This document shows, piece by piece, positions 55,126 through 60,888 of a DNA stretch of 64,000 nucleotides. Position 1 is the first letter of the stretch. Every line of letters begins with the position of its first letter. Location: assembly GCA_020137815.1 (NCBI GenBank), contig CM035350.1:1984001-2048000 (forward strand), read 5' to 3'. The position numbers and the translations under genes were made by a program. The notes below the pieces were generated by a model. It was not told the origin of the DNA, searched no databases, and saw only the letters and a program-made list of their open reading frames with translations. This DNA comes from Hormiphora californensis. Taxonomy: Eukaryota; Animalia; Ctenophora.

Positions 55126-58100
55126 TTATCTGTTTTTCCTTATGTGGCTCAGCGGAGTGATACTTTTTACAATTACTTCATATTGTTTTCCGACATTCTT
55201 TTCGGCTTCCTGACAATAAATCACTGCTGTTTTACTTCTTGCACTGCAAGTTGCAGTAATTGTTTTGGAATGGGGGAAGTTAATTTGATAACACGGTGAT
55301 CTGAATCATTACCTTCTAGACGGCATGATTCTGTTGGTTTCATCATCGTCGTTACTGTTACTGTCACTATCACTGTCAATCGTAATGACACTTGGACCTG
55401 TGTGAAACATTATATTACTATGTTGTAGGATTATATTATGCACGAGACCAAACTGCTACCTGCTGTATAAGCCATGCTACCAGTTGGACATGTACAACCG
55501 TATCATATCAAAATTGTATAATGCCAAATACGGTCGAACCCGGTCGAACTTCTATCTACAGTCGGACCCCGATTTACCGGGATCCTCGGGGGAAAGAATT
55601 TTACCCGGTAAATCGGGGTGCCCGGTATATCGGGGTCAATTACTATTAATTTCCTATTTTGGGGGAATATTATCCTCCCGGTAAATCGGGGCCCGGTAAA
55701 TCGGGGTCCGACTGTATATATTTAATCTCACTCCTCTCTTCTTCAATTATTTTTTCTCTTTTTCTATCTATTTTGTGTAGCCCCCTCCCACCTTGATTGT
55801 TTGGACGGGTCATGTATTCTTCATCACTGTCGCTTTGAGTATCCACATCAGATGCAAAATCAGAATCAGAGAACTCAATTTCAACACTCACCTGAGAAAT
55901 ACAGGCAAATTATATGTATTTTGTACATCGTATCAAGTTGATAATCTCAGAGTGGGTGAGAGGAGAGTGGGCGGATACTGCACGTGCTGATTGATGGGTG
56001 GTGTGTTCCTGCTGATTCTAGTTTACTAAACTAAAAAACTGGGGAGATCGTACAGATCGTAAATCAAGATGAAACTGCACTTCAGCTACCTGACCCCGTA
56101 CGATTATGAGACATAAAAACTCAACAAATACAACTGAGTCCGCATGAGCACAACATACAACAATTCGCACGTGCAGTATCAACCCGATCTTCCCATCAAT
56201 CCCCTTGCCCACAAATTTAGGATAAAAGGAAAAGGAAAGGGAGAATAAGTATACCTACCGTTGGAACTCTCCTTGCTGAATAACCTGCTCCCCGGAATTG
56301 CTCCATTAACTTGAGACAATGTTCGATACATCTCCGCCAATAGTCAGGAGGCAGCTGAAATGAGTCACAATAAGGGAGAGAAAGAGAGAAAAAGAGAGGG
56401 ATCACATCACATAGCATATAGCAGACAGGCAGAGAGAAAAACAGACCCCTCGATTTGCGATCGGTACGATCGCCCCAGTTTTGCTAGTTTTAACAAATTA
56501 TTAACAAATTATTAACCAAATAACCAATTTTTAAACAATTTCTCCATGTATCTTTCTCTCTCTCTCTCTCTCTCTCTCTCTCTCTCTCCACTCTCTCTCT
56601 CTCTCTCTTCTCTCTCTCTCTCTCTCTCTCTCTCTCTCTCTCTCTCTCTCTCTCTCTCTCTCTCTCTCTCTCTCTCTCTCTCTCTCTCTCTCTCTCTATG
56701 TCTCTCTCTCTATCTCTCTCTAACTCTCTATCTCTCTCTCTCTCTACCTCTCTCTATCTCTGTCTCTCTCTGTCTCTCTCTCTCTGTCTCCCTATCTGTC
56801 TCTCTGGTGAAAAGTTAGAGAAAAGACTGGTATGGGAGATGGTGAAGAAATTGTTGTAAATTAGTTAAAATTGGTTAAAAATTGGTTAAAAACCGATTTG
56901 ATGATATGGTGAAGAAAAGGTTAAAGATTTGGTTAAGATTTGGTTAGAAATTGAATATGTCACTGAAACAATAAATGTTGCTCTATGTTTGTGTAGGTGT
57001 TTGTTTGCTGTTTGTATAAAGCAGAAAGTTGGACTTACGTCATTGACAGCTTTGTTAACAAGGTTCTTCACATCCGAGAGCTTGCTGGTAGAGTTATTCT
57101 GAGCCACGTAACATTTGATCCAAGCCCATACCAGCTCGATCGCGTTAAAGAAACAATGCTTGACTGGCAAACGCAAAACTTTGATGTCTTTACCAGGTAT
57201 AGAGGCCAACAGGTCGTCAATCTGTGGATGTTGAGGAATTGTCAGATTCAACACAATATACAGTATAACTTTATACGGCCAACAAAATTGATCAGTTAGT
57301 CGAATATTTCATTACAACTCACCTTGTACACCGGGCTGGATAGATGTTTCTTCACCATCGAGTTGAGCTCCTCTCTACTTTCTAGTGTACTGACCGGTAC
57401 CCCCTTCCTTCTCAGCCAATCCCTCACTTGCTTCATATTCCATTTGCTGTTCGGATTCTTCGTATCGTCTAACAACAATGTCATGATTAAAGACATCAAG
57501 GAACAAGAGGATTTATTACTTGAAATCATTTAGAATACTTCATTAAAATGTCATTGAAAAGCTGAAAATGCTAGCTTACTTCTCTCACTCAAGTTGTCTG
57601 CTACCAACTCCACTTACCAGTTAGTTCCATGTGGTATGTGGCACGGTCAATGATGAGGACACACTTGGCAGGCAACTTTGGAGCGACCACTTCCTTGAGA
57701 TGTTTGAAGTATGTGTTTGAATTCATGGCCTTATGGTAGTCCTGGCTCGTCCCATCATTTTCAAACACATCAATGTCAATAAATCCCTGTTTACTTCCTG
57801 TGAACGTTTATTTTTCAAAAAACCACATAAAAATATCCAAACATAATTTAGTTTTGTCCACACTTCTCACTAAATATATCACTACATACCCACTCCATTG
57901 ATGATGAGCCGAGGACCAGCGCCACTCTTGATCTTCATGGAGCCTTGCCACGAGAATACCCCTGTTTTATCGTCAGTATTCAACCACTGAAAAAAGGAGA
58001 AGGGTGTTGTACTGTTGTAGATATAATGTCCCTTTCTCATATCTTTCAATCAAACCCTCTCTCAGTCGTCCCCTGCCACGGGTCACCTAAACCACCACCA

Positions 58101-60888
58101 CCCCCCCCCTCCCCGAGTCCCTCTTTGTGACTCTGCTTTCTTCTTACCTGCCATGTTTTTGATTTGCAATGGTTCGCATTACACCAACTCTCGTCGGCAA
58201 AAACAAGATCGTACCCCTCCGCCTCTAACTTGGCGATGTCCCGAAGGAACTCATCGCATTGTGCTCTGTAAAGAAATCAGTATTATGATTGTGACAGGGG
58301 TGAAGTATAATTTTAGGGTTAAAACTGAGAGCAAGGAAAAATGAGGATATACATATATCATGAACCGTGAGATTGTCTTGACTTGCCTAACATTTCCGCT
58401 AAATGTGATGAATTTGATAAATGTGATGATGGAATTCATTCCCAGGTGAAATGAGTGATGCATGAGCAATTCACCTGACATCAGCTCTTTCAAACGCATA
58501 TGTGAAGTTATTAGCTCTTCTGAAACTAAATCCCCAAACTTTTAGCATTCGACTGAAGAGAAGGATACAGGTTATAACTTATAATACAATGAACATGACT
58601 TGAATAAAAAGAGAGAGATATAAGAGAAAGCGAGAGAAAATAGACAGAGAGAGAGAGAGAGAGAGAGAGAGAGAGAGAGAGAGAGAGAGAGAGAGAGAGA
58701 GAGAGAGAGAGGAGAGACAATTCTTACCGAAATCCCTCGAAGCTGATACGGGGAATGTCTGGATATAGCGCTAATATGTGGTTGTGCACCTCTTTGATTG
58801 TTGGGTACTTTCCCTGGGCATATAACCTTTGTGTAAAAAGGGTAACATCAGTCTTCAGAAATCCAAACTTGTTTCCATTCCACCGGATGGCATTCGTTCT
58901 GGACGCGTTTCCTGACAAAACAATTCATGTAATCTCAGCAAATCAATATTGGTAGGCATAACTAAACTGGAATCATAACTCATACTGGATCACTTTGGTT
59001 CACACCCAGGGTTGATCCGGGTTTGATACTGGACTAGTTATGCCTACCAATTACCATGATACAGGTACACAGAAAATAATAAAAGAGAATGGAGTAAACA
59101 ATGCAGATCTCAGATCTGTATCCCAGATTTTGAAAAGTGGAAATATCATATGTAGGTCAAACGTCAAACATACTTTTTGGAGCAGCTATCGACGGAGTTT
59201 TCACAATCTTTTTCAGCAGTGTCGTCGATATCCCTGCTATTTTACGGGTTGCTGACGCATAGGGAATGCATTTGTGTTTTGGAACACCTGAAGCTGAAAC
59301 AAATGTTGTGTCTAGAAGACTGGGGTACTTGAGTAAATCTCGTAAAAGGGCTAATTGGGTCGTTTCTATAGGGCTCATTATTGTTCTTTTTTTGTTTAGT
59401 TTGGTCGTTTCTGTCTGTCTGTCTGTCTTCTGTCTGTCTGTCTGTCTGTCTGTCTGTCTGTCTGTCTGTCTGTCTGTCTGTCTGTCTGTCTGTCTGTCTG
59501 TCTGTCTGTCTGGGCTTCGTCTTCGTCGTCTGTTGTCTGTTGCAACGAGCTTTTTCAGGAAAAATTTAAACCTTTGCTTCAACCCAACCAATTGCAAAAA
59601 AACCCCCCCAATCTCTCAGTCGGCGGGGTGGAGCTGGCTCTGGAAGGTTTCCGTCAGCCTTTCTTACCAGATACCTACTTCTTTACAAAGCCTCCCACAT
59701 AGTAACGAGACCGACAAATGGTCACCAACAAATTTCTCAATGGAAATAATGAAATGACCATCTCAGCTATCTTGACTATCTTAACTATTTTCACTGCCAA
59801 CATATCCTATTCTACGGCCCTACCTCTTTATACTTGCTCCCTCCTCTCTTCCTCCTGTCTCTCCTTTTCTGGCTGCGCCTCTCACTCCTCTCATTCTCTC
59901 TCTCTCTCTCTCGTCTCTTGCTCATCGTCTCTCTCTCTCGTCTCTCTCTTCTCTCTCTCTCTCCTCTCTGCCTCTCCGTCTCTTTCTCTCTCTCTCTCTT
60001 CTCTCTCCTACCTAATCTCCTCTCTCTATATCTCTCTCTCTCTCTCCCTCATTTCTCTCTCGTCTCCTCACTAATTGGTTTCTCGCTCCCTCCCTAATTT
60101 ATCTCTCTCCCCTCCCTAATTTATCTCTCTCTCTTGCCCCCCATCTCTCCTTAATTAATCGCCACAAACAAACCAGGCAGCAAGCCAAATGAAATTTGAC
60201 CTCCCGGCCCCCCCCCTTTCTCTATCTCCCATAGATAGCTTAGATATATTTCACCATCAAACACGTCACACGTCATCCGTATGTTTCCAGCTTCCTCGAT
60301 ACCACCTAACTTATCCACGAAACCAACATAGTTTTTCTATTGAAATTCAAAGTGTCAGGTTACAATAGTCAGTCAGTCAGTCAGTCAGTCAGTCAGTCAG
60401 TCAGTCAGTCAGTCAGTCAGTCAGTCAGTCAGTCAGTCAGTCAGTCAGTCAGTCAGTCAGTCAGTCAGTCAGTCAGTCAGTCAGTCAGTCAGTCAGTCAG
60501 TCAGTCAGTCAGTCAGTCAGTCAGTCAGTCAGTCAGTCAGTCAGTCAGTCAGTCAGTCAGTCAGTCAGTCAGTCAGTCAGTCAGTCAGTCAGTCAGTCAG
60601 TCAGTCAGTCAGTCAGTCAGTCAGTCAGTCAGTCAGTCAGTCTGTCTGTCTGTCTGTCTGTCTGTCTGTCTGTCTTTCTGTCTGTCTGTCTGTCTGTCTG
60701 TCTTTCTGTCTGTATTTCTGTCTGTCTGTCTTTCTGTCTGTCTTTCTGTCTGTCTGTCTGTCTTTCTGTCTGTCTGTCTGCAACAAACCTAACTGCTGAT
60801 TTGAGATCTGCTTCAAATAATTATACACATTGAGGATGGTGGTTTTCTCCCTCAACTGGTAATCTTTTGCTCCAGTAGTTCTCCCCAT
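55126..60888 (-). CDS. Intron-rich IS630/Tc1/mariner (Sailor DD82E-like) transposase-derived gene, 13 exons, ~558 aa, D-D(86)E
   Basis: Exons 60789-60888, 59174-59365, 58728-58911, 58475-58552, 58148-58265, 57890-57986, 57618-57797, 57323-57468, 57039-57221, 56259-56354, 55792-55891, 55313-55397 and 55126-55243 splice GT-AG in phase without stops. Motifs VFADESW, GPRLII, DYHKAMN, IIDRATYH, LRLPVKHCFFNAIELVW. Confidence 0.85.
55559..55714. mobile_element. pogo/Tigger-like MITE (CAGTCGGACCCCGATTTACCGGG TIR, TA flanks) in an intron; degenerate relative at ~61124-61223
   Basis: ta|cagtcggaccccgatttaccggg … cccggtaaatcggggtccgactg|ta. Confidence 0.85.
60367..60780. repeat. Compound (GTCA)n-(GTCT)n tetranucleotide microsatellite; second (GTCT)n tract at 59410-59512
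   Basis: Direct inspection. Confidence 0.95.

Follow-up and report, generated by a model that had tools for sequence, protein, structure and literature searches.

Tc1/mariner-derived host genes are well known, among them SETMAR and the CENP-B/pogo derivatives. In SETMAR (Metnase), the domesticated transposase of the mariner element Hsmar1, a Tc1/mariner-fold domain is kept as a stationary host gene, which has a fused SET domain and an altered catalytic triad (DDN). Tc1-like transposable elements interrupted by spliceosomal introns were reportedly found in molluscs by Puzakov in 2020. The mobile elements Sleeping Beauty and Mos1 have inverted ends and a spacer of 34 amino acids (aa) without an insertion. 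The Sailor elements combine a DDE triad with a long D-E spacer (DD78-111E) containing two inserted helical segments, with two N-terminal helix-turn-helix units and with the motifs I/VVYLDET around the first aspartate (D1) and VIIMDNA around the second (D2); their ends are terminal inverted repeats of 23-57 bp, the target-site duplication is TATA, and no known domain has been reported for their insertion between D2 and the glutamate (E) (PMC8533490). The survey of these elements includes neither ctenophores nor a domesticated member (PMC8533490), and no domesticated gene of the Sailor superfamily, nor such a gene in ctenophores, was found in the literature searched. Here we describe a gene at positions 55126-60888 (minus strand) of a 64,000-nucleotide (nt) stretch of the ctenophore Hormiphora californensis (contig CM035350.1, positions 1,984,001 to 2,048,000), referred to as the window. 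An earlier note, made from the sequence of this window, had proposed the gene to be a host-domesticated recombinase.

The gene shares with the Sailor elements the DDE triad, the long spacer with its inserted helical segments and the two N-terminal helix-turn-helix units. Unlike them, it has neither inverted ends nor a TATA duplication, is split by 12 introns, occurs as a single copy and carries diverged motifs. Its catalytic fold is that of Sleeping Beauty and Mos1. Spliceosomal introns are a trait in common with the mollusc elements, but here they number 12 in a gene with one copy and no ends. In comparison with SETMAR, the DDE triad is intact, a foreign domain is absent, and the host role is only proposed. 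We consider it probable, if far from certain, that the locus is a complete, immobile, single-copy Sailor-derived (DD86E) gene kept by the host lineage under purifying selection, that is, a domesticated or "stationary" transposase.

Gene structure and family assignment

The splice sites were determined by enumerating all frame-keeping GT donors and AG acceptors between the 13 open coding cores on the minus strand (positions 55000-61000). A single best canonical solution was obtained at each junction, and the acceptor of exon 2 alone was ambiguous. The resulting 13 exons (Table 1) are joined by 12 GT-AG introns, all in phase, with lengths of 1501, 262, 175, 209, 161, 92, 149, 101, 684, 367, 394, and 69 nt for introns 1 to 12, respectively. 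By phase arithmetic, the stop-free coding sequence comprises 1596 nt, or 532 codons, and is followed by a TAA stop codon. For exon 2, the acceptor at 59287 is preferred over the possible sites at 59293, 59311, and 59251, because the linker length up to the first helix-turn-helix of the family, counted against the sequences of homologues, fits. If intron 12 is left unspliced, the frame stops at 55309-55311. The least certain exon is exon 13, which encodes 38 aa, is not acidic and has no detectable homologue. Owing to this exon and the ambiguous exon 2 acceptor, the exact length of the protein can be given only to within roughly 10-40 residues.

The 13 exons, the 12 canonical in-phase introns and the open frame described in the earlier note were thus confirmed by the enumeration and the phase arithmetic. 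Its complete frame was upheld as well, with the qualification that the given length of ~558 aa was somewhat high. The Asp/Ser-rich C-terminus, which had been assigned to three exons, is present, but only exons 11 and 12 are acidic.

The catalytic residues lie in the motifs LVFADESW (D1), VLIIDRATYH (D2), and FFNAIE (E). All three are diverged, and those around D1 and D2 are recognisably related to the published Sailor motifs. D1 and D2 are separated by 97 residues. With D2 at codon 281 and E at codon 368, the D2-E spacing of 86 aa reported before is exact, and the three catalytic codons are located (Table 1). Because this spacer falls within the DD78-111E range, the gene is a Sailor-type transposase by architecture. 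The published motifs are carried in the forms IVYxDET and VxDNAxYH by several homologues, such as P0010, P0022, and P0056.

Similarity searches of the gene were conducted exon by exon. Against the Pfam family DDE_3 (PF13358, gathering cut-off 28.6 bits), exon 7 scored 14 bits (profile positions 54-92) and exon 9 scored 16 bits (positions 105-145), each as a single exon below the cut-off. Scores of the homologues ranged from 30 to 52 bits, and the full-length proteins P0006, P0010, P0022, P0046, P0055, P0056, and P0008 were above the cut-off. Exon 7 searched against the full library matched 53 proteins, the best of which was P0001 with 66% identity. The homologue search with exon 9 gave no candidates, and a search with the homologue P0003 returned no protein encoded in the window. 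A profile built from 19 homologues matched the catalytic domain of Sleeping Beauty at 1.4e-9. The AlphaFold model of the homologue P0055 (predicted local distance difference test score 79) was compared by Foldseek and matched Mos1 (9.5e-8), Sleeping Beauty (7e-7), and SETMAR (3.7e-4). In a fragment alignment, exon 1 and exons 4-12 were colinear with full-length proteins of the family, beginning with the first helix and ending with the acidic tail. This alignment misplaced exons 2, 3, and 13; exons 2 and 3 were then positioned by eye. The gene can be read as a transposase of the DDE_3/Tc1-mariner fold, Sailor-type by architecture. The earlier assignment to a Sailor/IS630-like family was right, given the DD86E spacing, the weak DDE_3 matches and the fold of P0055.

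Exon 8 encodes the stretch inserted between D2 and E. Compared with the Pfam domain Ish1 (helix-extension-helix, HeH), this exon gave an E-value of 3e-5 and a score of 24.7 bits, just under the cut-off of 26.6. Folded alone by AlphaFold, it formed two helices with a 10-residue loop between them. The best template modelling scores of this model include the SAP domains of MANF and CDNF and the N-terminal region of Rho. None of these was significant, and an assignment of exon 8 to the SAP fold was rejected for this reason. The Sailor-specific insertion, which has an equivalent in the members of the family, may nevertheless resemble a SAP/HeH helix-loop-helix; we regard this as a lead and not as a result. 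It provides a hint on the nature of the previously unexplained D2-E insertion of the Sailor elements.

Copy number, ends, and signs of constraint

The genome searched comprised 110,691,255 bases in 45 contigs. At the DNA level, the full locus is unique across this assembly, and no second full-length copy was found. The only relatives detected in exon-protein searches are a distant paralogue on contig C9, a stop-containing piece similar to exon 7 on C6, and several fragments on C4. The paralogue and the fragments had gone unremarked in the earlier note. A six-frame DDE_3 profile search of the whole genome gave no matches, so that this type of search appears too weak for genes split in this way.

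Transposon ends were not detected. In a comparison of the flanks (blastn-short, ~3 kb on each side), the longest inverted repeats were 12-15 nt long, at unrelated positions and at chance level. The best local alignment between the 265 nt past the stop codon and the 3 kb upstream of the ATG scored 20, compared with a mean of 22.9 after shuffling. Nothing in the flanks exceeded chance, and the statement that enclosing terminal inverted repeats are missing holds.

The fragments on C4 (G000:C4:6473324-6477443) comprise two copies of exon 5 and one of exon 10; a separate exon-3-like piece is also located on C4. Between exon 5 and the better of its C4 copies, 10 synonymous and 3 non-synonymous differences were counted, with a synonymous divergence (dS) of 0.72 and a non-synonymous divergence (dN) of 0.032. 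In exon 10, nine of the codons differing from the C4 fragment are synonymous and four are not. The C4 copy has also retained the 3'-terminal 25 nt of intron 4 with two differences, one of which turns the acceptor AG into AT, indicating that the progenitor of the C4 fragments had that same intron. The fragments resemble what a formerly functional sister copy would leave behind. Their progenitor appears to have been constrained through most of the divergence and to have been dead afterwards.

When neutral substitution was simulated exon by exon, 4% of the copies were stop-free at 0.05 substitutions per site and 0.15% at 0.1. The copy in the window has no stops, no frameshifts and 12 of 12 splice sites intact. 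From the open frame and the simulation it follows that this copy has been selected or was released from selection very briefly. Since a brief release would leave the ends in place, their absence counts for selection. The simulation also bears on whether the gene model is false, namely a pseudogene whose relic exons are linked by chance splice-like sites. We consider this barely plausible: frames of this kind fail to survive even small neutral divergence, and there are 13 colinear exons, each matching the proper part of the family, with 12 in-phase canonical introns and zero stops. A point in its favour is the missing homologue of exon 13.

Unlikely, but a serious contender, is the explanation that a Sailor-like transposon with introns and few copies has survived intact only in this gene, which recently lost its ends or became immobilised and is not used by the host; the open frame would then reflect youth. 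The dead family fragments on C4 and C6 are consistent with such a history, as is the match of the acidic tail and of every domain to ordinary members of the family, and the synonymous excess over C4 could date from the time when both lineages were active. However, a young insertion is expected to show inverted ends of 23-57 bp and a TATA duplication (PMC8533490), neither of which is present. The nearest genomic relative is at a dS of about 0.7, yet the 13 exons are undamaged. Moreover, the 12 introns, microsatellite-filled and up to 1.5 kb long, are unlike those of known intron-bearing Tc1-type elements. A still-mobile element, whose ends are unconventional or lie far beyond the stretch searched, is very improbable. 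Its triad and DNA-binding exons would be complete, as they are here, but there is one full-length copy in 110.7 Mb, the stop codon of the neighbouring ABCG-type gene 265 nt away leaves little room for an end, and nothing within 3 kb upstream is complementary to these 265 nt.

Several points weigh against a domesticated gene. Dead fragments scattered over C4 and C6 resemble the remnants of a transposon family. The dN/dS evidence is small (about 60 codons), and the C4 comparator is not an orthologue; as a comparison of two lineages, it could reflect constraint that stems from an active transposon lineage. Exon 13 and the acceptor of exon 2 are uncertain. The acidic tail, described in the earlier note as a C-terminal extension, was found in the ordinary members P0010, P0056, P0008, P0022, P0046, and P0055. 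It is therefore ancestral and not a host add-on, and as a family-wide trait it loses weight as a point for domestication. Immobility, uniqueness, the intact frame and the synonymous excess support the host-domesticated recombinase proposed earlier. Domestication is the best reading of these data, as a probable rather than a proven one.

The CXC-fused paralogue, relatives elsewhere, and the proposed role

The paralogue on C9 is a second Sailor-type gene, which is intron-rich and looks intact. It is located at about 5571-9087 on the minus strand of L010 (G000:C9:7683000-7692999). It contains the triad motifs, an insertion of the same kind, an acidic stretch and, at its end, two tesmin/TSO1 CXC exons. 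The introns of the paralogue sit elsewhere than those of the window gene. In the nearest pair, they are 3-4 residues apart and differ in phase, which speaks against introns common to both genes. The different positions indicate that most introns were gained separately and hence that both genes have been resident for a long time. Exon 13 of the window gene was also considered as a decayed CXC domain. This was rejected, as it aligned neither to the CXC exon of the C9 paralogue nor to the homologue P0054, and a genome-wide TCR (CXC) search gave no matches near the locus.

Traces of a similar exon structure were found in public sequences. The exon-sized open reading frames P0001, P0002, P0004, P0016, and P0018 end after "...TG" at the position of the intron 7 donor and continue past it into donor-like sequence; P0001 and P0004 also start where the intron 6 acceptor lies. 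The protein closest to the window gene is P0003 (513 aa, on a Logan contig of 2051 nt), with 45-57% identity per exon. According to a genome-wide search, this assembly does not encode it. P0003 begins in acceptor-like sequence at the position of intron 5 and continues without a break over the counterparts of exons 6-10, from which we infer that it is a transcript, spliced in part, of a homologous gene of another organism. Both P0003 and P0054, which are 38% identical to each other, end in tesmin/TSO1 CXC domains and share a VKHCFFN-type motif before the catalytic Glu. In both, an acidic region follows the core, as it does in the C9 paralogue and in the window gene. In contrast to these three relatives, each with one or two CXC domains, the window gene lacks a CXC domain.

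P0054 (431 aa, on an ENA contig of 28.7 kb) is uninterrupted; its D1 is replaced (VFGGETW) and its CXC domain is kept. It is likely a catalytically dead derivative in another organism. In the ESM Atlas, the clusters nearest to P0054 join DDE_3 with PF27940 ("C21orf140-like"), and among them is a chordate cluster of C21orf140 itself, which suggests an origin of this vertebrate gene in the N-terminal region of these transposases. In the literature, no paper linking C21orf140 to this family was found.

If the window gene is kept by the host, its product is probably a DNA-binding protein that is still able to cut or nick DNA. The bipartite helix-turn-helix region encoded by exons 1-4 would bind DNA. 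The RNase-H-like DDE core, encoded by exons 5-9, would still coordinate a pair of metal ions and be able to nick or cleave DNA, like that of SETMAR; this ability is predicted because the triad and all family-invariant residues of the core are retained. Without moving itself, the protein would act in trans, with host DNA or remaining ends of the family as its substrate. The SAP/HeH-like insertion may provide a contact to DNA or chromatin, and the acidic tail may be regulatory. A more far-reaching version, in which the gene is the first domesticated member of Sailor, belongs to a small, old gene family of this lineage with one CXC-fused branch, and has its intact nuclease used for programmed DNA cutting or rearrangement and not just to bind DNA, seems to us quite improbable as a whole. 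If domestication is true, the stationary, catalytically complete copy and its CXC-fused sister would be two natural cases of the conversion of a transposase to a host factor that binds or cuts DNA.

Intron repeats and neighbouring features

The exons of the gene, its dead copies on C4 and the repeats located in its introns are listed in Table 1.

Table 1. Features of the Sailor-type gene and related sequences. Positions refer to the window unless another locus is named; percentages for P0003 are identities to the respective exon.
Feature	Position	Strand	Description
Exon 1	60789..60888	-	ATG at 60888, N-terminal helix; aligns to the N-termini of P0055, P0010, P0056
Exon 2	59174..59287	-	First helix-turn-helix; placed by eye against the family
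Exon 3	58728..58911	-	Linker and second helix-turn-helix; C-terminal half resembles P0054, P0055 (by eye)
Exon 4	58475..58552	-	End of second helix-turn-helix; maps to P0055 residues 125-154
Exon 5	58148..58265	-	D1 in VFADESW, codon 58193-58195
Exon 6	57890..57986	-	RNase-H-like core strands; P0003 57%
Exon 7	57618..57797	-	D2 in IIDRATYH, codon 57646-57648; weak DDE_3 match
Exon 8	57323..57468	-	Sailor-type insertion between D2 and E; helix-loop-helix, Ish1/SAP-like motif
Exon 9	57039..57221	-	E in NAIELVW, codon 57135-57137; weak DDE_3 match; P0003 45%
Exon 10	56259..56354	-	C-terminal helix of the transposase core (LPPDYW...); P0003 56%
Exon 11	55792..55891	-	Asp/Ser-rich acidic tail, part 1; aligns with acidic tails of the family
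Exon 12	55313..55397	-	Acidic tail, part 2
Exon 13	55243-55129, then TAA 55126-55128	-	Non-acidic end
Exon-5 copies (C4)	L014 7325-7468 and 9249-9381		89% and 86% identical at the nt level; both within a local duplication of 640 nt
Exon-10 copy (C4)	L015 3381-3443		81% protein identity; carries a stop
(AGTC)n/(GTCT)n microsatellite	60367..60780		Intron 1
Further tandem arrays	59410-59512, 59840-60133		Intron 1
Further tandem array	58610-58717		Intron 3
Further tandem array	56551-56805		Intron 9
Miniature inverted-repeat transposable element (MITE)	55559..55714 (156 nt)		Intron 11; perfect 22-nt inverted ends beginning CAGTCGGACCCCG, TA flanks

Every tandem array falls in introns 1, 3, and 9, and the MITE lies in intron 11, in agreement with the earlier observation that microsatellites and the MITE are confined to introns. 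The MITE is Tc1-like and not Sailor-like, because its ends begin with CAGT and are flanked by TA; these CAGT-type ends and TA flanks rule it out as a non-autonomous partner of the gene. A degenerate relative of the MITE is located upstream of the gene at about 61125-61223, with its end at 61202-61223.

The neighbouring gene on the plus strand encodes an ABCG-type transporter (ABC2_membrane match at 4.8e-11), whose last open frame extends to 54860. This neighbour and the Sailor-type gene are orientated tail-to-tail at a measured distance of about 265 nt, close to the ~270 bp given before. On the other side of the gene, the region 62906-63500 forms a near-perfect palindrome with 284-nt arms, which are 92% complementary, lie 27 nt apart and contain the same short open reading frame; it is probably a foldback element.

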